Origin: Bugula neritina
Taxonomy: Eukaryota > Animalia > Bryozoa
Assembly (NCBI GenBank): GCA_964035545.1
Contig: OZ037773.1
Span: 2,323,751-2,387,750, forward strand
DNA: 64,000 bases
Direction of reading: 5' to 3'
Position 1 is the first letter of the stretch. Each line of letters opens with the position of its first letter. A model generated the notes under the pieces. That model was not told where the DNA came from. It ran no database searches and saw nothing but the letters and a program-made list of their open reading frames with translations. The position numbers and the translations under genes are program-made. Below, one piece after another: positions 10,036-63,534 of this stretch.

Positions 10036-10410
10036 ATGCCTCTTAAAGTTAGCTACAAAGGTGCCAAGAAAGCAGCAAAGGCTAAAGCAGCTCCAATGTC
10101 TGGAGACAAGAGAAAACAAATAAAAGGCAATGGAAGTTACAGCACATACATTACTTACAACGTGTTGAAGCAAGTCCACCAAGACACTGGTGTATCTAGC
10201 AGCGCCATGAGGATCATGGAGAGCTTTGTCAATGATATGTTCCATATAGTAGTGAATGAAGCATCTAGATTGGCAGACTACAACAGGAAGTCCATGATAA
10301 CAAGCCGAGAGGTAGAGACTGTCCTGAAGCTGATTCTGCCAGGAGAGTTAGCTAAGCATGCCTAGGCTGAGGGTACAAAGGCTGTAACTAAATACGCCAG
10401 CTCCAAGTAA
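10036..10410 (+). pseudogene. H2B: Divergent histone H2B copy with a premature stop
   Basis: GAG>TAG at 10363-10365 removes the alphaC helix ([14 protein letters not shown]). The frame continues to the normal TAA at 10408-10410. Confidence 0.9.
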
Positions 10411-15991: not shown

Positions 15992-16927
15992 ATGGAGAAT
16001 AGCAGCGTTCTGTGCGGTGACATCACTGACTTTTGTGTAGACTCTACTAGATCCGCAGCGTTTTCATCTTTCAACATTTTCAGTGTTATATTCAACATCA
16101 TCAATTTGGTTTTCCTGAAGAAGTTAGACAAATCCAAAAGAAACGCATCATTTTGGATAATAGTGAACATCGGTATCTGTGACGTTGTGACTTGCTCCTC
16201 CTTTTCTCTGGCAGTCAGCTGTGAATTGAACAGACAAATCATAACTTTACCAGCAGTTGGTGCTCGAACCTTTCAAGTTATAGTGATTACATTTGGCTTT
16301 GTCTCAATTGTTGCTAGAAATTTTGTATTGGAGACTGGCGGCTATGAGCGATACGTCTCCATCTGTCAGCCTTATCAAGTGAGCTATAACAAAGTGGTTA
16401 GCAATATGAAACTCTTCTTGGCCATTGTTTGGATATTTACCTTTGCTCTTATGACTATCACTATTGCCACTGATACCACCAAGTATTGCTTTGGTGAGTT
16501 CGGAGCTATCCCAAATGACTCCAATCCACAGACTAGTGTTGCGTTTGTTGGATCCATTACAACAGCTTTTGTCATCTCTGTCATCTGCTTATCTAAGACT
16601 TGGAGAGAGTTGAAGAGAATGCAGTCCAGAAGTACAGTTCCAGGAAAAGATGATCTGATAGTGAAGAGATCTGCCCAGTATATTATAATAATCTTCATCA
16701 CTCTTTACTTGTCCTACATTCCAACAGCCATATCCTTAGTTTGTAATAACCTTAATGATAGTTTAAAGGGCTTAGGATATTTGGCCAGATGGATTTCTTT
16801 CTATTACATTACAATTTTTAGCATTCTTAATGTTGTAATATATTTCATCATGACCCCAGGCTACCGTATTCATGTGATGAATTTACTCATGTTGAAGACT
16901 CCAACAGTTGGTCAAATTAAATCTTAG
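15992..16927 (+). CDS. Intronless 7TM rhodopsin-like GPCR (orphan/chemoreceptor-like), 311 aa
   Basis: Seven hydrophobic segments, TM2 NIGICD, TM3 YERYVSICQP (E/DRY motif), TM4 W, TM6 SYIP, TM7 NVVIY. Confidence 0.88.
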   Translation: MENSSVLCGDITDFCVDSTRSAAFSSFNIFSVIFNIINLVFLKKLDKSKRNASFWIIVNIGICDVVTCSSFSLAVSCELNRQIITLPAVGARTFQVIVITFGFVSIVARNFVLETGGYERYVSICQPYQVSYNKVVSNMKLFLAIVWIFTFALMTITIATDTTKYCFGEFGAIPNDSNPQTSVAFVGSITTAFVISVICLSKTWRELKRMQSRSTVPGKDDLIVKRSAQYIIIIFITLYLSYIPTAISLVCNNLNDSLKGLGYLARWISFYYITIFSILNVVIYFIMTPGYRIHVMNLLMLKTPTVGQIKS

Positions 16928-18791
16928 ACCATTACTATGATACAAGTTGTTGTAGTAGTTTTGTTAAACAATGTTCATGCTTGCTACATATTGTAACCAT
17001 AATTGTTTGATGTTGCTATGACAACATGAGAAATAATATATTTTGTTATGATATTTAAAAAACCCGCCATGAAAAAGATATGTTGTGTAGAGTAATGCTT
17101 TGAATAAATGTTAAATGTATTCTGTATTCCTATTAAATTGTGAACAAAATTTACAAAGGAAAGAAGTGTAGGAGTTGGCGGAACAGGAAGTTAGTGGTCT
17201 GAGTCCCGTCACATGATATGTTTGAAAGAGTATCCACTCATAGTTTCTCCTGCATGTGCAGCGTTTAAAAAATTTCTCAGCAGGCTTTAAATTAAAACCT
17301 TTTCATTAGATGTTCTCACGATAAACACTATAAACTTATATAATTATGAGCTTTTCGAGGCTTCGAATACACTTGCATATATGTTAATATAATATGGAAG
17401 CAATCGGTATATTATCAGCTCTGTGTAATGCCTAGATAGCTTTCCAACCAGAATGCACTGTTTTCAAAACAAAAAATGAATATGCAATTGATAACTCTAT
17501 AGTCTATACTCCGTACCAATAATTTCCGCGTGTGTAGCCCCTCTACGCCTCATAAAGAGGATAACTTGTAAAAGGTTGATAATAATAATATGTTCTTTAC
17601 GCTACCAGTCTATGCAACGCAGACACTCTTGAAATATTCAACAGCTACTAAAATTTAGGTTGCAGGCAAATTGGCGATCAACAATATTGAGGGGGGGGGA
17701 ATAAAGCTATTTGATTAGCAAGTCTCATGAGTATTTTGTAAGTCTCAAATAATTATTTATATTTCATCTTTATATATACTGGAACTTATTTATTTAACAT
17801 GATAGCTCATTTTTTCACTTTATTATTTTATTTAATAAAAGTGAAGTTTATTTTGTATCAAACATAATATTATATAACAGCTTCCAAGTGGGTTCAAGTC
17901 ATAATGATCACTTTGTTTTCACCTAGACCATGTAGTTAAGCAAATGGTTAGTTTGAAACACCCTGCTGGGTGAGTATGGAGATAACAGAGCTTAATCTAG
18001 CCAAGAAATGTAAAGCATAGCTATAGCATTAAATACAGTTGTTACGCACTAGCTTGGTACATCATACTTCACTATAATTATACTAATAGTAAGCAGCAGC
18101 TTTGGAACTCAAATTCTTAGGGTTGAATAGTAGATGTGGTGAGATCCATAACTAAAGCTGCACAGAAAAGCTAAATGTATTAGGAGTTCTACAGTTGATA
18201 TAATATTTGTGCGCATACTACATAATTTAATTTTTGTTAGGAGAAGGCTGATTCTAGCTTTCAACTGGTCCACTACTCCAGTCTAGCCAAGGTTCACCAA
18301 GGTTTAAGCTTTGAATTTTCTAGAGTCTAGACAAGCATTATCTGTGGATTATTGGTGTAAGTTATGAATCCTATCATAAATCTACTATACAGCTCACTGC
18401 AGCTCTAATAACTCTACTTCTGTAATGGTGTGACTGCAGGTAAAATCTGAACAGTAGCTATGAGTTGCTAAGGTGCCACCCATTAATGTTTATTATAGAC
18501 AACAGCAACTAAACAAATTGCACCAGGAGTCTGCTTCAACATAACTATTTTGATTTGTGAAGTCTGGGATGGACAATTCCTGGAATGCAGGTTAAGCCTG
18601 ATAGAAGATTATACTTTTTACTCAGTTGTTTATGTATACACTATACTTTACATAGTTTATATAAATTTAAATAGAACATGTTGATGAGTGAGTGCATTGC
18701 AAACTTTATAGAGCCCAATATATATCTAGAAGGTGTATCAATAATTTATTATTCAAAGGTTTGAACAACTCTACAAGTAAACATTTAAAGT

Positions 18792-18807
18792 GGCCCTGAA
18801 AAGGGCC
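18792..18807 (-). terminator. Histone 3' stem-loop of chimeric gene copy 1
   Basis: Reverse complement is GGCCCTTTTCAGGGCC, a perfect stem, about 44 nt after the TGA at 18851-18853 and embedded in H2B 3' flank sequence. Confidence 0.93.
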
Positions 18808-18850
18808 GTTGGGGTTAGTAGCGGAGCTTGGAGAGATTACTAACAGGTTG

Positions 18851-20301
18851 TCATAGACTAGAATGCGAGATTTCTTCGTCCACATGTCGACTGAGAAGTA
18901 GTTGCAGCAAAGTATTTTGTCTTTGCTTTACCTGTATAAAAAAATATTATACGTTAACAAATGGAACTGTTGTTAACATGGGTTTTTTAATAAATTGTAG
19001 TAGCTACAGATTAGAAATAAGTTTGCTTATTTTGCAATCAAGAAACAAAATTATCTTTCATAATTGTTGCCTACCTCATGAGTTGCTCGGCTTTGTAACT
19101 GTGAAGCCAGTTGGGTTAATATTTTGTCACTAAGGGTAAACCTTTCGCCACACTCCAAAGCTGCAGTCTTCAATGCTCTTAGAAGTATCTTGTCCTCAGC
19201 TCTAAAAGTATACCATCCCCATATTGCATGATTTATATTCTTCAACTTCAACAATGCATTTAAATGTAAAGTGCCACTGAAAGTACTGTGATAAAACTGT
19301 GGGTTTGAATGTAGCTAGTTGCCCTGCATGCTATAGTTATGAAGAACAGGTCGAAAAATTGTGTATAAATTATGGTAGCTTTATTGTGTAGAATAATATA
19401 ATAGGTCTGCATCCAGCGAGCTCCAGTAGTAGACTGAACTACACTGGAACTCGCTGGCTTTTATATACAAGCAGAACAAAGACATTCCTTTGTTGCAGAA
19501 ATGCCAACGATTCAAATTTCAACAGAGTAAAATATCTTAGTTCTCTTCCAAAGCTCTTTTCTAGTGGCCTATAGGTTCATTTTAAGTTACAAACGAAGAT
19601 TAGGTGAGTCAGATTTCACTTTTAGAAAGTAAGCTTCTGCACCAATATGCAATTTCAACGATTTTCAGTTTGACTATTAAAAGGGGTACTTTTTTCAGCA
19701 AAGGTATAAACAAAACTTCAGTACAGGGCGTCAACTTTATAACATTAAGTTTATACAATAGAGGAATTACCTTGTCCACGGTGCTATGACTGGTTGACCT
19801 GGGAGAGGTAAAGCTGGTGTGAGCTCCTTGGGGTCTGTACGGAGAGTAATGACCTCTGCAAATAACATCAGAAAGTAAAGATTATGCACAATTTACAAGT
19901 TGAAAAGAGAAATTTAGCAGCATAGGCTGAAGAAGTGCAATCTGAAACTTGCATTTACAGGAGTACAGCCGGTCACACATTACACTTCATCGGCCAATGT
20001 TATAGAGTTGAGTTTGAGCCAACATGATACACTCTACTTAAACAAACATTGGCTTGGGTATATTACAATACAGAAAAAAAATTTCTACACTCAAAACTCT
20101 ATAAAACTTACCATTACTGAGAGATAAATGACAGCCTTTAGTGTCATCATCACCTTCCTCATTCAGCTGACTCGGTGGGGGATCCAAGTGACGGTAATAG
20201 GCAGGTCTCAGGCCCCTGCGAGGTCCAGTACGTCCAGACATTCGAGCTGCTTTAGCTTTTCCTGCTTTCTTGGCACCTTTGTAGCTAACTTTAAGAGGCA
20301 T
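18851..20301 (-). CDS. Chimeric spliced gene, copy 1: H2B N-tail fused to a FLASH/GON4L-like SANT/Myb domain, 160 aa
   Basis: Exons 20301-20112, 19855-19771, 19201-19075 and 18931-18851. All introns are GT-AG with compatible phases 1, 2, 0. Protein [160 protein letters not shown]. Confidence 0.8.
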
Positions 20302-20560
20302 GCTATTCAGTTAGTGATAATGTTGAATTCTTGTTCTTGATGTAATGACTGCAACAATAGTTTGATGCTAAATGATGTTCAGATCTTAGGGCACTCTGTA
20401 TTTATATGTATCAACAGTAGTTAGAAATTATCCAATCAGATGGCGGTAGCTTAAACTGCCGCCTTAGTGTGCCCTAATGTTTACATTGAAAACAATTATT
20501 TGTCATAGACCAATGAAACTCGTAGAGCAATCTAATTTGCATATCTTATACAATATAGCC
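20302..20560 (-). promoter_or_regulatory. H2B promoter upstream of chimeric gene copy 1
   Basis: TATA (tatttata 20399-20406 on +), CCAAT 20432-20436, octamer ATTTGCAT 20535-20542. Inverted copy of 9790-10035. Confidence 0.8.
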
Positions 20561-21940
20561 AAGACAAACTGTTGGGGAAATAGGTAGGCAACTTCGAGTT
20601 GAATTCCAATAAGTTACTCTAAACTTTGAAATAATATTGTACTTTTCAACAATTATTGATATAATGTAAATTTTGACTTAAGTTTGTATATAACATCATT
20701 ATAGTGCATAGCTTATTTATTTTTATTTAGCCAGAACTTTAAACTTTTTAAAAAGTTTGGTCACTTTTAAAAGGCAAAACGTGAATTATTAAATATCTCT
20801 TTAAAAAAAAACATTACTCACTCCAAATAATCAGTATTGTGCTCACCAATCTATCCATAAGTTCACATAGTGGCACTTGTGTATTTACTCATATACAGTG
20901 TGAAAACTGCAGATAACTTCATTACTAGTATGACTATAAAATTACCTAAATAACCATGGGAATAGCTGAACTCCTATCATTCAATACAAGCAAGGTATAG
21001 ATAGTTTCTTCTTGATGCACAGCCTGGATATTTTTCTTATTAAGAAATCACAGGTGTGAGAATGGCTAAGGAAATTATTATTTTTAGCCTACAATTAATA
21101 AACTATACACAGATTAAATAAATAATTAAAATAGGCTATAGCAAACTATAGATATGTAGCTATACTTAACTAAAACTTCAGGTTAATTATAATATTGTGT
21201 TTATTAGAAATAATGTAATGTCATATATTTACGAACTCAATCATACTCTTTCTAATGAAATGGCTTCCAATATGATTACCCAGCCAACAGTTTATACTAG
21301 CATTGGGTAGAGAGTAGACAACTCTAGATAAAAACAATTTGTAAAAAGTATAGGGTGTGGTGCGGGCAGGAATTGTGTGGTTGTAGATACTATGATCTGT
21401 TTGACTAGATTGTTTAAAGTAGAGACAGGGGAATACATGTGTTAGAAATAAACATGTCCTACGTTTGTTTAATAATTGTTTAGGAATTTTTATGAGTAGT
21501 AATTTGTATTTTAAATATACATGCATAGATCCCACTGTCAGTTATAATGCATTATAAATATTTGTAAAGATTTTGGTTGTTCCCCATAATAAATGTATTT
21601 TTATAGAGAATCTAAGCTTATGCAGCCTAATAGCTTGCATATATTGCTTACTTCAGTTAAAACCATTATAAAATATAATTATGTATAATAAATCTGTATG
21701 TTTATAGTTTCTTACATGTAGTTAAACATTTGTATATTGTTGAGGTTTTAATAAACTTGGGAAAAATTGCCCTATAAACCAATACTATATTAAAGTGCCA
21801 TGCAAACAAAATTTTAAAAAAATTACAACCCAAAGTTGAAATCATTTTAAGGTTGAATGTTTTACCTTGCTTACTCCTAAAAGTAAGCTTTTTATGTAGT
21901 TGAATTAGATTTTTATTTATAGTATGCTATCTAGCTAAAA

Positions 21941-24283: not shown

Positions 24284-24658
24284 ATGCCTCTTAAAGTTAG
24301 CTCCAAAGGTGCCAAGAAAGCAGCAAAGGCTAAAGGAGCTCCAATGTCTGGAGACAAGAGAGAACAAAGAAAAGGCAAAGGAAGTCCCAGCACATACATT
24401 ACTTACAATGTGTTGAAGCAAGTCCACCAAAACACTGGTGTATCTAGCAGCGCCATGAGGATCATGGAGAGCTTTGTCAATGATATGTTCCATATAGTAG
24501 TGAATGAAGCATCTAGATTGGCAGACTACAACAGGAAGTCCATGATAACAAGCCGAGAGGTAGAGACTGTCCTGAAGCTGATTCTGCCAGGAGAGTTGGC
24601 TAAGCATGCCGAGGCTGAGGGTACAAAGGCTGTAACTAAATACGCCAGCTCCAAGTAA
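24284..24658 (+). CDS. H2B: Divergent histone H2B variant, 124 aa, intact
   Basis: [32 protein letters not shown] and GTKAVTKY motifs. Promoter upstream, stem-loop downstream. Confidence 0.92.
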
Positions 24659-26653: not shown

Positions 26654-26948
26654 TATGTAGCATAATTATGCTCTCAGTTTATTAGGTAGCATGAACTCTT
26701 AGTCTATGATGTAGCATATACTCTCAGTCTATGATGTAGCATATACTCTCAGTCTGTAATGTAGCATATGCTCTCAGTTAGTAAAGGAGTGTATGCTCTC
26801 ATGTATATAATGTAGCATACTTTCAGCCTATGATGTAGCATGCTCTCAGTCTATGCTGTAACATACTTTCTGTCTATATGGTATAGTTTGCTATCAGTCT
26901 ATGATGTAGTGTATGTTCTCAGTCTGTATACTCTCAGTATACTGCAAT

Positions 26949-27258
26949 CATACATACATACATACATACATACATACATACATACATACATACATACATA
27001 CATACATACATACATACATACATACATACATACATACATACATACATACATACATACATACATACATACATACATACATACATACATACATACATACATA
27101 CATACATACATACATACATACATACATACATACATACATACATACATACATACATACATACATACATACATACATACATACATACATACATACATACATA
27201 CATACATACATACATACATACATACATACATACATACATACATACATACATACATACA

Positions 27259-27292
<34 letters not shown>

Positions 27293-27305
27293 CATACATA
27301 CATAC
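26949..27305. repeat. (TACA)n microsatellite, expanded
   Basis: About 350 bp here versus a few units at the paralogous sites near 12700 and 59170. Confidence 0.98.
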
Positions 27306-27596
27306 ACACATACACACATCCACATATACATACACACAACCATACTCAATTCTCACTTAGATCTACCTGGTGAAACATCGTGTATCTACTGTATCCACAA
27401 GTGAGTTAGTAACTCTGTGTTGCAGCTGAGATATGTCTTAGAAGACACGCTGTACGAGGCCGGAGTGGACATGTATATTTCTGCCCATGAGCACTCCTAT
27501 GAGCGGGCCTGGCCTATCTATGACAGAAAGGTATTCCCTGTCTGCTGTGTTTATATGTTAGGAAAGGGAGTTTTCTCCTCATGTAGATATGTACGT

Positions 27597-32503: not shown

Positions 32504-33439
32504 ATGGAGAATAGCAGCGTTCTGTGCGGTGACATCACTGACTTTTGTGTAGACTCTACTAGATCCGCAGTGTTTTCAACTTTCAACATTTTCAGTGTTA
32601 TATTCAACATCATCAATTTGGTTTTCCTGAAGAAGTTAGACAAATCCAAAAGAAACGCATCATTTTGGATAATAGTGAACATCGGTATCTGTGACGTCGT
32701 GACTTGCTCCTCCTTTTTTCTGGCAGTCAGCTGTGAATTGAACAGACAAATCATAACTTTACCAGCCGTTGGTGATCGAACCTTTCAAGTTATAGTGATT
32801 ACATTTGGCTTTGTCTCAATTGTTGCTAGAAATTTTGTAGTGGCGACTGGCAGCTATGAGCGATACGTCTCCACCTGTCAGCCTTATCAAGTGAGCTATA
32901 ACAAAGTGGTTAGCAATATGAAACTCTTCTTGGCCATTGTTTGGATATTTACTTTTGCCCTTATTACTATCACTATTGCCACTGATACCACTAAGTATTG
33001 CTTTGGTGAGTTCGGAGCTATCCCAAATGACTCCAATCCACAGACTAGTGTTGCGTTTGTTGGATCCATTACAACAGCTTTTGTCATCTCTGTCATCTGC
33101 TTATCTAAGGCTTGGAGAGAGTTGAAGAGAATGCAGTCTAGAAGTACAGTTCCAGGACAAGATGATCTGATAGTGAAGAGATCTGCCCGGTATATTATAA
33201 CAATCTTCATCACTCTTTACTTGTCCTACATTCCAACAGCCATATCCTTAGTTTGTAATAACCTTAATGATATTTTAAAAGGCTTAGGATATTTGGCCAG
33301 ATGGATTTCTTTCTATTACATTACAATTTTTAGAATTTTTAATGTAATAATATATTTCATCATGACCCCAGGCTACCGTATTCATGTGATGAATTTACTC
33401 ATGTTGAAGACTCCAACAGTCGGTCAAATTGAATCTTAG
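32504..33439 (+). CDS. Intronless 7TM GPCR, 311 aa, intact paralogue
   Basis: Near-identical to 15992-16927, YERY motif retained. Differences include VVATG for VLETG and S>R in TM7. Confidence 0.88.
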   Translation: MENSSVLCGDITDFCVDSTRSAVFSTFNIFSVIFNIINLVFLKKLDKSKRNASFWIIVNIGICDVVTCSSFFLAVSCELNRQIITLPAVGDRTFQVIVITFGFVSIVARNFVVATGSYERYVSTCQPYQVSYNKVVSNMKLFLAIVWIFTFALITITIATDTTKYCFGEFGAIPNDSNPQTSVAFVGSITTAFVISVICLSKAWRELKRMQSRSTVPGQDDLIVKRSARYIITIFITLYLSYIPTAISLVCNNLNDILKGLGYLARWISFYYITIFRIFNVIIYFIMTPGYRIHVMNLLMLKTPTVGQIES

Positions 33440-37546: not shown

Positions 37547-37562
37547 GGCCCTGAAAAGGCCC
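37547..37562 (-). terminator. Histone 3' stem-loop of chimeric gene copy 2, with one stem mismatch
   Basis: Reverse complement is GGGCCT-TTTC-AGGGCC. The third base pair is G-G. Confidence 0.88.
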
Positions 37563-37605
37563 GTTGGGGTTAGTAGTGGAGCTTGGAGAGATTACTAACA
37601 GGTTT

Positions 37606-39042
37606 TCATAGACTAGAATGCGAGATTTCTTCGTCCACATATCGACTGAGAAGTAGTTGCAGCAAAATATTTTGTCTTTGCTTTACCTGTATAAAAAAAT
37701 ATTATACGTTAACAAATGGAACTGTTGTTAACATGGGTTTTTTAATTAATTGTAGTAGCTACAGGTTAGAAATAAGTTTGCTTATTTTGCAATCACAAAA
37801 CAAAATTATCTTTCATAATTGTTGCCTACCTCATGAGTTGCTCGACTTTGTAACTGTGAAGCCAGTTGGGTTAATATTTTGTCACTAAGGGTAAACCTTT
37901 TGCCACACTCCATAGCTGCAGTCTTCAATGCCCTTAGAAGTATCTTGTCCTCAGCTCTAAAAGTATACCATCCCCATATTGCATGATTTATATTCTTCAA
38001 CTTCAACAATGCATTTAAATGTAAAGTGCCACTGAAAGTACTTTGATAAAACTGTGGGTTTGAATGTAGCTAGTTGCTTTGCATGCTATAGTTATGAAGA
38101 ACAGGTCGAGAAAATTAGTATAAATTAGGGTAGCTTTATTGTGTAGAATGATATAATAGGTCTGCATCCAGCGAGCTCCAGTAGTAGACTGAACTACGCT
38201 GGAACTCACTGGCTTTTATATACAAGCAGAACAAAGACATTCCTTTGTTGCAGAAATGCCAACGTTTCAAATTTCAACAGAGTAAAATATCTTAGCTCTC
38301 TTCCAAAGCTCTTTTCTAGTAGCCTATAGGTTCATTTTTAGTTACAAAGATTAGGCGAGTCAGATTTCACTTTTAGAAAGTAAGCTTCTGCACCAATATG
38401 CAATTTCAACGATTTTCAGTTTGACTATTAAAAGGGGTACTTTTTTCAGCAAAGGTATAAACAAAACTTTAGTACAGGGCGTCAACTTTATAACATTAGG
38501 TTTATACAATAGAGGAATTACCTTGTCCACGGTGCTATGACTGGTTGACTTGGGAGAGGTAAAGCTGGTGGGAGCTCCTTGGGGTCTGTACGGAGAGTAA
38601 TGACCTCTGTAAATAACGTCAGAAAGTAAAGATTATGCACAGTTTACAAGTTGAAAAGAGAAGTTTAGCAGCATAGGCTGAAGAAGTGCAATCTGAAACG
38701 TGCATTTACAGGAGTACAGCCAGTCACACATTACACTTCATCGGCCAATGTTATAGAGTTGAGTTTGAGCCAACATGATACAATCTACTTAAACAAACAT
38801 TGGCTTGGGTATATTACAATACAGAAAACAATTTTCTACACTCAAAACTTACCAATACTGAGAGATGAATGACAGTCTTTAGTGTCATCATCACCTTCCT
38901 CATTCAGCAGACTCGGAGGGGGATCCAAGTGACGGTAATAGGCAGGTCTCAGACCCTTGCGAGGTCCAGCACGTCCAGACATTCGAGCTGCTTTAGCCTT
39001 TCCTGTTTTCTTGGCGCCTTTGTAGCTAACTTTAAGAGGCAT
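37606..39042 (-). CDS. Chimeric spliced gene, copy 2: H2B N-tail fused to a FLASH/GON4L-like SANT/Myb domain, 160 aa
   Basis: Exons 39042-38853, 38606-38522, 37956-37830 and 37686-37606. Same lengths (190/85/127/81 nt), GT-AG sites and open frame as copy 1. 13 amino-acid differences by hand count. Confidence 0.8.
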
Positions 39043-39300
39043 GCTGTTCAGTTAGCGATATTAATGTTGAATGCTTGCTCCCGATGTAATGACTGCAACA
39101 GTAGTTTGATGCTAAATGATGTTCAGATCTTAGAGCACTCTGTATTTATATGTATAAACAGTAGTTAGAAATGATCCAATCAGATAGCGGTTGCTTAAAC
39201 TGCCGCCTTAGCGTGCCCTAATGTTTACATTGAAAACAATTATTTGTCATAGACCAATGAAACTCGTAGAACAATCTAATTTGCATATCTTATACAATAT
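39043..39300 (-). promoter_or_regulatory. H2B promoter upstream of chimeric gene copy 2
   Basis: tatttata 39143-39150, CCAAT 39176-39180, ATTTGCAT 39279-39286. Confidence 0.8.
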
Positions 39301-41221
39301 AGCCACGCCAAACTGTTGGGGAACTAGGTAGGCAACTTCGAGTTGAATTCCAATAAGTTACTCTAAACTTTGAAATAATATTTTACTTTTCAACAATTAT
39401 TGATATGATGTAGATTTTGACTTAAGTTTGTATATAACATCATTATAGTGCATAGCTTATTTATTTTTATTTAACCAGAACTTTAAACTTTTTCAAAAGT
39501 TTGGTCACTTTTATAAGGCAAAACGTGAATTATTTAATATCTCTTTGAAAAAAAACATTACTCACTCCAAATAATCAGTATTGTGCTCACCAATCTACAC
39601 ATAAGTTCACATAGTGGCACTTGTGCATTTACTCATATACAGTGTGTAAATTGCAGATAACTTCATTACTGACCAGTATGACTATAAAATTATCTAAATA
39701 ACCGTGGGAATAGCTGAACTCCTATCATTCAATACAAGCAAGGTATAGATAGGTTCTTCTTGATACACAGCCTGGATATTTTTCTTATCAAGAAATCACA
39801 GGTGTGAGAATGGCTAAGGAAATTAATATTTTTAGCCTACAAATAATAAACTATACACAGATTAAATAAATAATTAAAATAGGCTATAGCAAACTATTTT
39901 CTGACAAAAAAAAGGAATCTTTTGCAAAAAGCTCTAATTATACAGGTCAAAGGAGCTAGGTGCAAAACGAATATGTTCATGAAAGCATTAATTATACATG
40001 TGTTCAGTATTTGTGCTATAAAATTTTTATATTTTATATCAACTAGTTGTTGGGAGCAAAATTAACAACTTGGAGTAATTTGAGGAATACAATTTCATTG
40101 GAGATGGTTAGGTAATTTCAATTTGATGTAGGTTATACTGTCTTTTTGATTATCCCTCTTTAAATTTTGGCTCCAACTCTCAAATTTAATATTTCAGTAA
40201 TTAAAAATAAATAGCAATTTATATACACACAGAGTTTAATAAATTGTATTTCAAACATTCCCTTATACAGCTCAGTGTGAAGTTGATGTCACTGGTTCCT
40301 ACTTGATGAAGCATTTTCATTCTGAGATTCCATTGAGGAATTTATAACATGTTATATGCTTTAGACAGGTGTGCCATAAACATGGAGAAACTATGACTCT
40401 GTGGTATATATATAAAATGAGGCATTTAAAAGGTGATTCTCCCACTTTTATTCATATTATACATATGCACATAAAGTAATGTTATGTGTTATGTCTTTGA
40501 GGGCCACATAAAAGTTAAGCTGGTGGCCCTTCTTAAATGTAGTTAAACATTTGTATATTGTTGAGGTTTTAATAAACTTGAGAAAAATTGCCCTACATAA
40601 GCAAATACTATATTAGAATGCCATGCAATCGAAATTTTAAAAGAATTACAACCCAAAGTAGAAATCATTTTTAGGTTGAATGTTTTACCTTGCTTACTCC
40701 TAAAAGTAAGCTTTTTATGTAGTTAAATTAGATTTTTATTTATAGTATGCTATCTAGCTAAAAGATTCTTGCTGTTAGTTTTGCTTTAATTGAAGCGCAA
40801 ATAATATACATATAGTATGGGAAAGTTTATAATGATATACCTTTTTGTAGCAGACTATGTAACCTATAATATAGTGTAGATATTTAAACTTATACTGACG
40901 CATTTGAATTAGTATAGGAGCCAATATTACATAATATATATATATATATGTTATACTTTTTGTAATGAATAAGCTGGTCCGCTATACTGGTGTAGAACTT
41001 TCTAGAGAGTCTAGACAAGTATTATCTACAGATTATTGGTGTAATTTAGGAATAATCCTATCATGTCTACTATTCAACTCACAGTTCTTATAACTGTGTT
41101 TTTATAATGGTGTAACCAGGCAAAATTTGAACATATTTGCAATCAGCTCCAAAGCTGCCTCACACTGTCCATGTTTATAGACAACAGCACCTGAACAAGT
41201 TGCATCAGGTGTCTGCTTGGA

Positions 41222-41539
41222 GCAGCCCGTACTGGCGATAAGAAAAAGAAAAGGAAGAGAAAAGAAAGCTATGGAATCTATATTTATAGAGTATTGAAAC
41301 AGGTTCACCCTGACACTGGTGTCTCCGGCAAGGCAATGAGTGTAATGAATAGTTTCATCAATGATGTGTTTGAAAGAATTGCTGGAGAGGCATCGAGACT
41401 TGCTCACTATAATAAAAAATCCACCATTACCAGCCGGGAAGTTCAGACTGCAGTGAGGTTAATCCTTCCGGGAGAATTATTGAAACACGCTGTATCTGAA
41501 GGTACAAAGGCTGTGACTAAATACACCAGCTCCAAGTAA
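41222..41539 (+). pseudogene. H2B: Near-canonical histone H2B, 5'-truncated (no start codon or promoter)
   Basis: [105 protein letters not shown]. In-frame TGA at 41192-41194 upstream with no ATG in between. The upstream DNA is an inverted H2B 3' flank. Confidence 0.88.
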
Positions 41540-41568: not shown

Positions 41569-41584
41569 GGCCCTTTTCAGGGCC
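41569..41584 (+). terminator. Histone 3' stem-loop
   Basis: GGCCCTTTTCAGGGCC. Confidence 0.95.
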
Positions 41585-44148: not shown

Positions 44149-44428
44149 CTAAGATTCAATTTGACCGACTGTTGGAGTCTTCAACATGAGTAAATTCATC
44201 GCATGAATACGGTAGCCCGGGGTCATGACGAAATATATTACAACATTAAGAATGCTAAAAATTGTAATGTAATAGAAAGAAATCCATCTGGCCAAATATC
44301 CTAAGCCCTTTAAAATATCATTAAGGTTATTACAAACTAAGGATATGGCTGTTGGAATGTAGGACAAGTAAAGAGTGATGAAGATTATTATAATATACTG
44401 GGCAGATCTCTTCACTATCAGATCATCT
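44149..44428 (-). pseudogene. GPCR 3' fragment (TM6-TM7-C-tail)
   Basis: DDLIVKRSAQYIIIIF...KTPTVGQIES*. The 5' part is replaced by downstream-flank sequence. Confidence 0.88.
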
Positions 44429-45393
44429 GTTTGATACAAAATAAACTTGGTTTTTTTCAAATAGAAAATAAAGTGAAAAAATTAGCCATTAGTCAAATAA
44501 ATAAGTTCCAGTATGTATAAAGATTAAACATAAATAATTATTTGAATATTACAAAATACTCGTGAGACTTGCTATTCAAGTAGCTATTTTTCCCCCAATT
44601 ATTGTTGATCACCAATTTGTCTGCAACTTAAACCTTGGTAACTGTTGAATATTTAAAGAGTGTCTCAGTTGCATAGAGTGGAAGTGTAAATATCATTATC
44701 AAACTTTTACAAGTTATCCTCTTTATGAGGCGTATAGGGGGCTACTCTAGCACACACGGATTATTGGTATAGACTATAGAGTTATCAATTGCATATTTAC
44801 TTTTTAATTTTGAAAATTGTGCATTTTAGTTGGAAAGTTATCTATGCATTGCACAGAGCTCATAATATACTAATTACTTTCATATTATGTCAATATATTA
44901 TATGCAAGTGTATTCGTAGCACCAAAAAGTTCATATGAGTTTAGAGTGTCTATTGTGAGAACCTCTGATGAAAAGATTTTAATGTAAAGCCTGCTAAGAA
45001 CATATTTACATGTGGCACATGAGAAATTATGAGTGGATACTCTCTTGAACATAGCAGGTGTGTGGACTAAAACCACTAACTTAGTGTTAATTCACTAACT
45101 CCAGCGCCAAGACTGATTTCCTTTGTAACCTTTCTTTTCAATTTAATACTAATTAATATAAAAATTAACTTTAAGACATTTATTTAGAGCACTATAACTT
45201 AACACGACATATCTTTTTCATGACTGATTTTTTAAATATCGTAGCAAAATATACTATTAATTGATATTTCAATTCATGTTGCCATGGCAACTTCAAACAA
45301 TTGCAGTTACAATGTGGTCATTCTTTGACATTAAAATGAGCAAGTATGAACATTGTTTACCAAAACTACAACAACTTTTATTATAGTAATGAT

Positions 45394-47604: not shown

Positions 47605-47979
47605 ATGCCTCTTAAAGTTAGCTCCAAAGGTGCCAAGAAAACAGAAAAGGCTAAAGCAGCTCCAATGCCTGGAGACAAGAGAAAACAAAGAAGAGGCAAA
47701 GGAAGTTACAGCGCATACATTACTTACAACGTGTTGAAGCAAGTCCACCCAGACACTGGTGTATCTAGCAGCGCCATGAGGATCATGGAGAGCTTTGTCA
47801 ATGATATGTTCCATATAGTAGTGAATGAAGCATCTAGATTGGCAGACTACAACAGGAAGTCCAAGATAACAAGCCGAGAGGTAGAGACTGTCCTGAAGCT
47901 GATTCTGCCAGGAGAGTTAGCTAAGCATGCCGAGGCTGAGGGTACAAAGGCTGTAACTAAATACGCCAGCTCCAAGTAA
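47605..47979 (+). CDS. H2B: Divergent histone H2B variant, 124 aa, intact
   Basis: Histone-fold motifs as at 24284. Retains SYS and HPD. Promoter and stem-loop present. Confidence 0.92.
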
Positions 47980-52048: not shown

Positions 52049-52871
52049 TATAGAAACAACAACACTATAAACTTTAGCAACAGTGTTTTTTGAATAAACT
52101 CTTGTGGAGCTTATTAGTTTATATTATTGCAATGTAAATAAAACACCATCATTGAACTCTGCCATGAAATGTTTCATTGAATGTTATAAAGTATTGCAGC
52201 AGCTTTGGGGCTCTTTGCAAATATGTTCAAATTTTACCTGCAGTCACACCATTGCAAAAAATAGAGTTATGAGAACTGTGAGTTGAATAGTAGATATGAT
52301 AGGATTCATAACTTACACCAATAATCTGTAGATAATACTTGTCTAGAGTCTAGAAAATTTCAAATCTAAACAAATATTTTGTTTATTAAGGATTAACCAC
52401 CCTGAACCTTCGCTAGACTGGAGTAGCCATACTCACCCAGTATGGTGTTTCAAACTAACCATTCACTTGACTATAGGTGGTCTAGGTCAGAACTCAAGTG
52501 ATCATTGGCTTGAACCCACATGGAAGCTGTTATATAATATGTTTGATACAAAATAAACTTGGCTTTTATTAAATAAAAAATGAAGGGAAAAAAATTAGCT
52601 ATCTGTTAAATAAATAAGTTCCAGCTAGTATATATAAAGATGAAACATAAATAATTATTTGAGACTTACAAAATACTCATGAGACTTGCTATTCAAATAG
52701 CTTTATCTCCCTCCCCCCCCCCTTCGAATATTGTTGATCGCCAATTTGCCTGCAACCTAAATTTTAGTAGCTGTTGAATATTTCAAGAGTGTCTGCGTTG
52801 CATAGACTGGTAGCGTAAAGAACATATTATCAAACTTTTGCAAGTTATCCTCTTTATGAGGCGTAGAGGGG

Positions 52872-53520
<649 letters not shown>

Positions 53521-54147
53521 GATTATTGGTATAGACTATAGAGTTATCAATTGCATATTCATTTTTTGTTTTGAAAACAGTGCATTTTAGTTGGAAATTT
53601 ATCTATGCATTGCACAGAGCTCATAATATACTAATTGCTTTCATATTATGTCAATATATTATATGCAAGTGTATTCGTAGCACCAAAAAGTTCATATGAG
53701 TTTATAGTGTCGATTGTGAGAACCTCTGATGAAAAGATTTTAATGTAAAGCCTGCTAAGAAAATATTTACATGTGGCACAGGAGAAATTATGAGTGGATA
53801 CTCTCTTGAACATAGCAGGTGTGTGGACTAAAACCACTAACTCAGTGTTAATTCACTAACTCCTGCACCAAGACTGTTTTCCTTTGTAGCCTTTCTTTTC
53901 AATTTAATACTAATTAATATAAAAATTAACTTTAAAACATTTATTAAGAGCATTACTTAACACAACATATCTTTTTCATGACTGACTTTTAAATATCATA
54001 ACATAATATACGATTTCATATTTTAATTCATGTTGCCATGTCAACTTCATACAATTATGGTTACAATATATAATCATTCTTCCACATTAAAACTATAGCA
54101 AGCATGAACGTTTAACAAAAAGACAGTTATTTTATTATAGTAATGAT

Positions 54148-56397: not shown

Positions 56398-56772
56398 ATG
56401 CCTCTTAAAGTTAGCTCCAAAGGTGCCAAGAAAGCAGCAAAGGCTAAAGGAGCTCCAATGTCTGGAGACAAGAGAGAACAAAGAAAAGGCAAAGGAAGTC
56501 CCAGCACATACATTACTTACAATGTGTTGAAGCAAGTCCACCAAGACACTGGTGTATCTAGCAGCGCCATGAGGATCATGGAGAGCTTTATCAATGATAT
56601 GTTCCATATAGTAGTGAATGAAGCAGCTAGATTGGCAGACTACAACAGGAAGTCCACCATAACAAGCCGAGAGGTAGAGACTGTCCTGAAGCTGATTCTG
56701 CCAGGAGAGTTAGCTAAGCATGCCGAGACTGAAGGCACAAAGGCTGTGACTAAATACGCCAGCTCCAAGTAA
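56398..56772 (+). CDS. H2B: Divergent histone H2B variant, 124 aa, intact
   Basis: Histone-fold motifs. Promoter and stem-loop present. Confidence 0.92.
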
Positions 56773-62598: not shown

Positions 62599-63534
62599 AT
62601 GGAGAATAGCAGCGTTCTGTGCGGTGACATCACTGACTTTTGTGTAGACTCTACTAAATCCGCAGCGTTTTCATCTTTCAACATTTTCAGTGTTATATTC
62701 AACATTATCAATTTGGTTTTCCTGAAGAAGTTAGACAAATCCAAAAGAAACGCATCATTTTGGATAATAGTGAACATCGGTATCTGTGACGTTGTGACTT
62801 GCTCCTCCTTTTCTCTGGCAGTCAGCTGCAATTTGAACAGACAAATCATAACTTTACCAGCAGTTGGTGCTCGAACCTTTCAAGTTATAGTGATTACATT
62901 TGGCTTTGTCTCAATTGTTGCTAGAAATTTTGTATTGGAGACTGGCAGCTATGAGCGATACGTCTCCATCTGTCAGCCTTATCAAGTGAGCTATAACAAA
63001 GTGGTTAGCAATATGAAACTCTTCTTGGCCATTGTTTGGATATTTACCTTTGCTCTTATGACTATCACTATTGCCACTGATACCACCAAGTATTGCTTTG
63101 GTGAGTTCGGAGCTATCCCAAATGACTCCAATCCACAGACTAGTGTTGCGTTTGTTGGATCCATTACAACAGCTTTTGTCATCTCTGTCATCTGCTTATC
63201 TAAGACTTGGAGAGAGTTGAAGAGAATGCAGTCCAGAAGTACAGTTCCAGGAAAAGATGATCTGATAGTGAAGAGATCTGCCCAGTATATTATAATAATC
63301 TTCATCACTCTTTACTTGTCCTACATTCCAACAGCCATATCCTTAGTTTGTAATAACCTTAATGATATTTTAAAGGGCTTAGGATATTTGGCCAGATGGA
63401 TTTCTTTCTATTACATTACAATTTTTAGCATTCTTAATGTTGTAATATATTTCATCATGACCCCAGGCTACCGTATTCATGTGATGAATTTACTCATGTT
63501 GAAGACTCCAACAGTTGGTCAAATTAAATCTTAG
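62599..63534 (+). CDS. Intronless 7TM GPCR, 311 aa, intact paralogue
   Basis: Four amino-acid differences from 15992-16927 by eye. YERY motif retained. Confidence 0.88.
   Translation: MENSSVLCGDITDFCVDSTKSAAFSSFNIFSVIFNIINLVFLKKLDKSKRNASFWIIVNIGICDVVTCSSFSLAVSCNLNRQIITLPAVGARTFQVIVITFGFVSIVARNFVLETGSYERYVSICQPYQVSYNKVVSNMKLFLAIVWIFTFALMTITIATDTTKYCFGEFGAIPNDSNPQTSVAFVGSITTAFVISVICLSKTWRELKRMQSRSTVPGKDDLIVKRSAQYIIIIFITLYLSYIPTAISLVCNNLNDILKGLGYLARWISFYYITIFSILNVVIYFIMTPGYRIHVMNLLMLKTPTVGQIKS

Follow-up and report, generated by a model that had tools for sequence, protein, structure and literature searches.

What has become of a histone H2B gene in which the region coding for the histone fold is taken up by foreign DNA, and what could the resulting protein do? 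The question is raised by a locus on the minus strand (positions 18792 to 20560) of a stretch of 64,000 nucleotides from Bugula neritina (GenBank assembly GCA_964035545.1, contig OZ037773.1, positions 2,323,751 to 2,387,750 of the forward strand), which is called the window in what follows. An earlier note, made from the letters of the window, had described this locus as a FLASH/GON4L-like SANT domain placed inside an H2B transcription unit. Sequence comparison now identifies it as a lineage-restricted, multi-copy, chimeric protein-coding gene, with a divergent H2B paralog as host and a GON4L/Mute-like gene as donor. The best overall explanation, to which we give a probability of roughly 0.4, is that of a chimera kept by selection, whose product would act as a competitor or modulator at the docking site of NPAT.

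The two parents of the chimeric gene

The H2B-derived parts of the gene were defined by alignment with four H2B-like genes from elsewhere in the window (10036, 24284, 47605 and 56398; all on the plus strand). The 400 bp upstream, the 5′ untranslated region (UTR) and codons 1 to 23 aligned at about 93% or more to these H2B-variant genes, codons 24 to the end were found to be exactly replaced, in frame, and at least 290 bp downstream of the stem-loop aligned with the intact genes as well (Table 1). The limits of the intron-containing insert of about 1.4 kb that replaces the H2B fold, formerly set at 18841-20232, were correct within 2 nt. Splicing of the minus-strand exons yielded again the open protein of 160 amino acids (aa) predicted before, ending at a TGA, with splice phases 0/1/2/0 and three of three introns of the GT-AG type with good polypyrimidine tracts. 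Replication-dependent histone genes are intronless, whereas here the removal of three GT-AG introns is required for an open frame. By motif presence in the sequence, the promoter is of the H2B type, with octamer, CCAAT and TATA motifs retained in all five copies of the chimera.

Domain queries of Pfam and phmmer were carried out with parts of 76-100 residues, and whole-protein steps with the public homologues P0001 and P0005. The histone fold (Pfam PF00125) was detected neither in the exon pieces of the chimera nor in P0001, while the intact neighbouring H2B-variant genes encode 124 aa with a Histone domain; the H2B remnant of the chimeric protein consists of 23 tail residues only. The host, formerly named simply H2B, is in fact a divergent paralog, only 70% identical to the mutually similar H2B copies found elsewhere on C9 (the contig of the window) and on C5, which are taken as canonical H2B. 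All intact copies of the H2B variant retain a perfect stem-loop.

A nucleotide-level search of the 216-Mb genome to which the window belongs, with the 1,392-bp insert as query, returned five full-length copies on C9 (93-100% identity), one inverted fragment and, more distant in sequence, a single locus on contig C4 (17.595-17.597 Mb, 77-84% identity). The C4 locus answers the search for a parental gene and the comparison of introns that had been proposed earlier: it shares with the chimera the four exon pieces, the positions of the introns and the splice sites, parts of the introns can be aligned, and the stop codon of the locus is intact. Because introns and splice sites are shared and the stop is intact, the chimera was copied from DNA and not from mRNA, and the donor survives. 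The copied piece (1.4 kb, three introns included) has one end in the middle of a donor exon and the other 11 nt beyond the stop codon.

C4 carries, upstream of this locus and in the same orientation, two PAH repeats (PAH1 32.8 bits when spliced, PAH2 25.2 bits; Pfam gathering score 21.3), preceded further upstream by acidic exons. The PAH repeats, present in the donor gene, are missing from the chimera. Two PAH repeats plus, at the C-terminus, a SANT domain that binds NPAT/Mxc constitute the layout of GON4L/Mute (PMC12979687, PMC13001340, PMC7432317). The donor is considered GON4L-like and not FLASH, because the two PAH repeats and the same C-terminal exons stand together on C4 and a separate SANT exon is found on C1; very probably it is the GON4L orthologue itself. 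The origin proposed earlier, from FLASH or GON4L, is upheld for the latter and set aside for the former.

The separate SANT exon, also of the GON4L/FLASH type, is located at C1:20830865-20830990 on the plus strand (L024:1465-1590), scores 20.2 bits against PF21227 and, like the SANT exon of FLASH, ends directly at a stop codon. Its only PDB neighbour was 1UG2 (E 0.66, a weak match), whose clone name we take to be mouse Gon4l. The aligned residues agree with the residues of human YARP given in PMC7432317, and the exon is a candidate for the last exon of a FLASH orthologue.

Within the donor gene, a 345-aa rhodopsin-type G protein-coupled receptor (GPCR) gene (L015:4536-5573, minus strand) lies antisense in the intron by which the first PAH repeat is interrupted, and a long minisatellite, in frame as VRVDVVS, occupies the preceding intron (L015:1939-3920). 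The dispersed repeat in intron 2 of the chimera occurs at least 35 times in the genome, with 80-94% identity and on every large contig, and is not present in the donor gene; where it stands, copies of the chimera in the public B. neritina assembly have another repeat, of about 400 bp. At the 5′ junction, the 157-aa copy of B. neritina was first read as a seamless joint by GGA microhomology, a reading undercut by the 160-aa copy, which has an RTG filler there.

Copies and constraint on the reading frame

Five intact copies of the chimera are located on C9, two of them within the window. Start, stop and the 160-codon frame are kept in five of five, 30 of 30 splice dinucleotides are retained, and the copies differ from one another by only 2-5%. 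They belong to an array at C9:2.2-2.45 Mb with units of about 18-19 kb, each comprising an H2B variant, a rhodopsin-type GPCR open reading frame (ORF) and, on the opposite strand, the chimera. The inverted fragment (C9:2301305-2301775, plus strand; L006:1501-1971) is decayed, contains part of exon 1, intron 1 and exon 2, is 86-89% identical and is without the H2B part.

When the last 100 residues of the protein were used in a word-based search, one cluster of six GenBank models came up, all annotated as "hypothetical protein", from the public Bugula neritina assembly GCA_010799875.2. They include two full models with the same exon junctions, P0001 of 157 aa and P0005 of 160 aa, and at least two copies are present in that assembly. 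The models were predicted by AUGUSTUS with hints from a transcriptome (PMC7576161) and, being predictions, are no proof of expression. The loci of GCA_010799875.2 match the present genome at only 83-89%, and the copies cluster by genome with 100% support; for these reasons the genome of the window is regarded as a sibling lineage of the publicly sequenced B. neritina. The comparison of the copies places the fusion before the split of the two lineages, with amplification or homogenisation separately in each.

Tests for constraint compared the two lineages, which are separated by a noncoding divergence of about 10%. The ratio of nonsynonymous to synonymous change (omega) was 0.30-0.40 by NG86, LWL85, YN00 and maximum likelihood (bootstrap 95% interval 0.15-0.52). 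Differences over the three codon positions were 10/10/27 (p=0.002), and lineage-fixed differences 10/7/21 (p=0.014). In the introns (968 bp, seven copies) 26 distinct indels were counted, 22 of them not multiples of three; in the exons (483 bp) there was one, of 9 nt and in frame, which gives no frameshift against about 11 expected (P about 2e-5). The probability of meeting no premature stop over the approximately 80-90 substitutions was about 0.03-0.04. The low omega, the third-position excess and the lack of exon frameshifts beside the 22 or so frame-breaking intron indels indicate that the ORF is under selection; it appears to be real but moderate purifying selection, relaxed or diversifying among recent duplicates. 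That this is a real, selected coding gene is judged probable.

Table 1. Features of the chimeric gene and of its second copy in the window (positions in the window).
Feature	Position	Strand	Remarks
Promoter and 5′ UTR	20302..20650	-	common to H2B-variant genes
Octamer ATGCAAAT	20542-20535	-	
Inverted CCAAT	20515-20510 and 20437-20432	-	
TATA motif TATAAATA	20406-20399	-	
Exon 1	20301-20112	-	H2B-derived part 20233-20301, filler 20227-20232, donor-derived part 20112-20226
Exon 1, H2B-derived part	20233..20301	-	ATG and 23 N-terminal tail codons
5′ junction	20233/20232	-	H2B ...ATGTCTGGA / CGTACT / donor GGACCTCGC
5′ junction filler CGTACT	20227..20232	-	codons R-T; part of the 9-nt in-frame indel missing from one B. 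neritina copy (157 aa)
Exon 1, donor-derived part	20112..20226	-	begins within donor exon (GPRRGLRPAYY...); acidic EEGDDD patch; 86% nt identity to donor L014:1101-1206
Intron 1	19856..20111	-	GTAAGT...CAG; inherited from donor gene
Exon 2	19771..19855	-	linker; its end ...QPVIAPWTR is the start of the SANT/Myb-like domain
Intron 2	19202..19770	-	dispersed repeat (about 215 bp) at 19284-19502
Exon 3	19075..19201	-	SANT/Myb-like helix I, long loop, helix II; 82% nt identity to donor L014:2206-2332
Intron 3	18932..19074	-	GTAGGC...CAG; inherited from donor gene
Exon 4, coding part	18851..18931	-	SANT helix III and 12-residue tail; stop TGA 18853-18851
Donor 3′ UTR remnant	18840..18850	-	11 nt past donor stop
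3′ junction	~18840/18839	-	donor TGA + 11 nt / TAATCTC of H2B; AG microhomology
H2B-variant stop TAA, 3′ UTR and stem-loop	18792..18839	-	aligned to intact H2B-variant genes
Downstream signals	18745..18774	-	possible histone downstream element (HDE) GTAGAG 18774-18769; AATAAA 18750-18745
Second full copy	37547..39394	-	exons 39042-38853, 38606-38522, 37956-37830, 37686-37606; stem-loop 37562-37547 with C>G mismatch

Other features of the array are as follows. Divergent H2B family at 24284-24658, 47605-47979, 56398-56772 and 10036-10365 of the window (all plus strand), each with octamer/CCAAT/TATA promoter and perfect stem-loop; the copy at 10036 carries a premature TAG, 15 codons early. A yet more divergent H2B-like ORF at about 41219-41536 (plus strand), 65% identical to the variant over residues 18-124, with a perfect stem-loop at 41569-41584. 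Intronless ORFs for rhodopsin-type seven-transmembrane (7TM) proteins of 311 aa (Pfam 7tm_1) at 15992-16927, 32504-33439 and 62599-63534 (plus strand), one per array unit, between H2B variant and chimera, and a fragment at 44149-44460 (minus strand). Ahead of the window, short fragments of the H2B C-terminal half with stop codons at C9:2304274-2304399, 2309068-2309220 and 2314710-2314835; the divergent H2B seems to break and recombine repeatedly. Long microsatellites of the TATG/TACA type and a 0.7-kb (CA)n run, giving rise to spurious long ORFs, at 1416-2118, 26840-27404 and 52757-53590 of the window.

Possible roles of the encoded protein

In the reading preferred here, transcription of the chimera would start at the H2B-type promoter, its three introns would be spliced out, and its product would be a nuclear protein of 157-160 aa with a basic H2B tail, an acidic and proline-rich linker, and a lone SANT/Myb-like three-helix module corresponding to the one by which GON4L/Mute, within the histone locus body, attaches to the C-terminus of NPAT/Mxc. 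NPAT/Mxc is the only documented partner of the GON4L/Mute SANT domain (PMC13001340). The SANT domains of GON4L and FLASH bind the same 31 C-terminal residues of NPAT in a mutually exclusive way, and GON4L/Mute is a repressor of histone genes (PMC7432317, PMC10730174) whose PAH repeats, in GON4L, recruit CRAMP1 (PMC12979687). The chimeric protein lacks these repeats, which bind CRAMP1 and resemble the PAH domains of Sin3, and also the YY1-binding region. Since it keeps the docking module and has lost both of these parts, it would most likely act, with its SANT module only, as a competitor for or modulator of the NPAT site that GON4L (repressor) and FLASH (3′ processing) share, and would tune the output of histone genes.

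The sharing of the same 31 residues by two mutually exclusive proteins makes the idea of an NPAT decoy plausible. Action through NPAT or the histone locus body, taken by itself, is proposed only tentatively. A stricter version, in which a SANT-only decoy driven by the histone promoter would be made when histone genes fire, would enter the histone locus body and, by taking the C-terminal site of NPAT, would displace the GON4L repressor (with CRAMP1) and/or FLASH, is unlikely.

The residues listed for human YARP (PMC7432317) were mapped onto the chimera by our own alignment, which is not a tool result. In this mapping helix I keeps its R..D(K/R) start, helix II its hydrophobic pattern and helix III its T-x-E-V / K-Q-R / L-L-x-L-L elements, and the hydrophobic positions of the YARP-NPAT interface (PMC7432317) are mostly conserved in character.

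Several results, on the domain and its target here and on the gene itself further below, weigh against the competitor or modulator role. Four Myb/SANT families of Pfam matched the spliced C-terminal 82 residues with E values of 0.002-0.14, all below threshold. The best of them was PF21227 Myb_DNA-binding_7 (E 0.002, 18.4 bits against a cut-off of 27), which was also the single match of P0001 (15.4 bits against 27). Translations of single exons gave no match against Pfam, since each of the three exons involved carries only a part of the domain. With phmmer, the spliced domain and P0001 obtained only chance-level matches in PDB (DNAJC2 SANT 0.16, BQLF2 0.54) and no link to 1UG2, and P0001, searched against 1.84 billion representatives, found two short genomic ORF fragments of its own family and no GON4L or FLASH. 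The earlier note had expected the FLASH/GON4L SANT domain as top match; PF21227 ranked first in Pfam, at a score below threshold, and the solved vertebrate GON4L/FLASH SANT domains were not detected by phmmer. Neighbours in the ESM Atlas were generic Myb-like proteins at 0.84, a score often reached by shuffled proteins. AlphaFold2 (P0001 alone, and a four-row alignment) gave one or two long continuous helices with a predicted local distance difference test (pLDDT) of 67-70 and no three-helix bundle. In our own mapping the loop between helices I and II is 8 residues longer than in YARP, and at the position of YARP Phe2196, a residue of the hydrophobic core in contact with NPAT, the donor has Leu and all chimeras have Gln. 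Finally, the NPAT C-terminus was not found in this genome, either with Pfam NPAT_C or with the human 31-residue peptide of PMC7432317. As direct similarity search and AlphaFold gave no usable support, it is by descent from a GON4L-like gene that the domain is linked to the NPAT-binding subtype.

Part of this evidence also suits a functional gene with a role unrelated to NPAT or the histone locus body, in which the module is re-used for histone tails, DNA or another chromatin factor. One variant might be a germline- or embryo-specific chromatin protein made from the H2B-variant promoter, with the H2B tail as a tag for nuclear import or modification. Such a role would agree with an ORF under selection, with a domain very far from the SANT of vertebrate GON4L and FLASH, with the change from Leu to Gln at a core and interface position on the chimera branch, with the concentration of most changes relative to the donor in helices I and III, and with a host that is an array of a divergent H2B paralog and not the canonical cluster; SANT domains are, in a passage of PMC7432317, described as versatile binding modules. 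Against it stand the sole documented partner of the domain in GON4L/Mute, NPAT/Mxc (PMC13001340), and the conserved character of most hydrophobic interface positions. We regard an unrelated role as a possibility of less than even standing.

A lower place is given to the view that the chimera is a non-functional by-product, multiplied within the 18-19-kb tandem repeat, with a frame that is still open because the copies are young and undergo gene conversion. In the five recent copies, which differ so little from each other, the variable sites fall 11/18/14 over the codon positions, without bias, and show no constraint. Exon identity between lineages (88%) is not higher than that of the introns (90-92%), and the nonsynonymous divergence (dN) of 0.074 is close to that of the introns, so that constraint may be modest. 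The decayed inverted fragment nearby also fits this view.

The 3′ end of the gene gives further points in the same direction. The stem-loop of the copy at 18792-20560, GGCCCT-TTTC-AGGGCC at 18807-18792 (6-bp stem, UUUC loop, -11.4 kcal/mol), is perfect, as it is in two B. neritina copies. In the other four of the five copies in this genome a C>G change damages it (-8.2 and -5.4 kcal/mol versus -11.4 for the perfect stem): either the third base pair is lost or the stem has to shift and its loop shrinks to 3 nt. One of the four bears an additional change. The promoter, 23 tail codons, 3′ UTR and perfect stem-loop that had been described as kept are thus kept in the copy described there, with a mismatched stem-loop in the four others. 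The element read as a putative HDE, 12-20 nt downstream of the stem-loop, reads GTAGAG in place of GAAGAG in five of five chimera copies of this genome, while intact H2B-variant genes and the copies of B. neritina retain GAAGAG; the AATAAA further on is taken as a putative poly(A) signal.

According to a passage of PMC3661734, which cites Pandey et al. 1990, an intron prevents stem-loop-dependent processing. As introns reportedly block this processing and both stem and putative HDE are damaged, the mRNA of the chimera would be expected to be spliced and, in most copies, probably polyadenylated; in most copies it is probably not a classical stem-loop histone mRNA. The proposal that the protein is made with histone-gene timing is therefore doubtful, in view of the three introns (PMC3661734) and of the stem damage in four of the five copies; it is weakened at the level of RNA stability and not at that of the promoter.

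Two public runs were examined, both as Logan contigs: X1 (labelled RNA-Seq, 2016) and X2, which behaves as DNA of the same or a close organism. No spliced joints of the chimera were detected in the contigs of X1 or X2, where the introns were covered unspliced. X1 carries B. neritina alleles and shows very deep coverage of the H2B tail, which continues as canonical H2B. An X1 contig that ends at 18790, two bases past the stem-loop, was considered as a histone-type 3′ end and rejected as a graph artefact, because 31-mers of the chimera merge there with the H2B-variant 3′ UTR. Exact patterns of the exon 1/exon 2 and exon 2/exon 3 spliced junctions gave no match in JGI metagenome contigs, a search without positive control.

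What renders a mere by-product improbable is the reading frame between lineages: seven copies in two lineages, at about 10% noncoding divergence, hold no frameshift, stop or lost splice site beside some 22 intron indels that are not multiples of three, the lone exon indel is of 9 nt and in frame, and omega is well below 1, with a third-position excess. An artefact of assembly or annotation, with an H2B gene mis-joined to a GON4L fragment, can practically be dismissed: nothing was found in its favour, the same junctions occur at five places here and on separate contigs of an independent public assembly, and contigs of independent runs span both of them (the 5′ junction by X2 contigs, 20138-20312; the 3′ junction by an X1 contig, 18790-18919).

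The selected chimera acting at the NPAT site thus keeps its place as the preferred reading. If its decoy form were true, a histone gene would for the first time be seen to have taken over the module that targets its own regulator, and the result would be a self-built feedback loop on histone supply, since amplified in copy number. The docking module alone has been excised and put under a histone-type promoter, with its frame kept for long and in many copies. If expressed and NPAT-binding, it would offer a ready-made natural competitor for dissecting the NPAT site, and a clean example of the birth of a new gene by in-frame replacement of the coding core inside an intact regulatory shell. It touches the question of how GON4L/Mute and FLASH share the docking site of NPAT and what this does to histone supply; the importance of the Mute-Mxc interaction is stated as not yet investigated in PMC13001340. 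If it is not expressed, it would still be a well-resolved gene fusion mediated by microhomology or filler and followed by tandem amplification.

Comparison with known systems

In comparison with GON4L/YARP (human), Mute (Drosophila) and Udu (zebrafish), residues 24-160 or so of the chimera are a DNA-level copy of the C-terminal exons, including the SANT/Myb-like domain. Differences are the lack of the PAH repeats, the YY1-binding region and the long disordered body (160 aa versus about 2,000), the possession of an H2B promoter, tail and 3′ end, and a domain sequence far from that of vertebrates. The C-terminal SANT domain of FLASH (CASP8AP2) is of the same subtype and uses the same NPAT site, where a SANT-only protein could compete (PMC10730174); FLASH is not the donor, given the separate SANT exon on C1, and its Lsm11-binding N-terminus is absent from the chimera.

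Replication-dependent H2B genes with polyadenylated or spliced transcripts, such as human HIST1H2BD, resemble the chimera in promoter motifs, tail codons, stem-loop and a downstream AATAAA, which in the chimera could give a poly(A)+ mRNA, as in the alternative H2B transcripts described in a part of PMC3661734. Unlike them, it has no histone fold, contains three internal introns and derives from a host paralog only 70% identical to canonical H2B. MacroH2A likewise joins a histone gene to a foreign domain, but it keeps the histone fold and enters nucleosomes, which the chimeric protein cannot do.

Chimeric genes formed by partial duplication or fusion at DNA level are represented by Sdic of Drosophila, and human YY1AP1 is a partial GON4L-related paralog. 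As in genes of the Sdic type, two parents can be identified, the junctions show microhomology or filler, introns were inherited and tandem amplification came later; two parental loci, defined junctions and a maintained ORF mark the present gene as a new gene of this class. It differs in that the recipient contributes only the regulatory shell and the tail, and in that the donor regulates the recipient's own class of genes. No paper describing the gene was found in the literature search, in agreement with the claim that no gene of such architecture had been described, except that unnamed GenBank models exist as hypothetical proteins. Chimeras by partial duplication are already known; new among them is the variant in which the shell of a histone gene encloses the docking module of a regulator of such genes.

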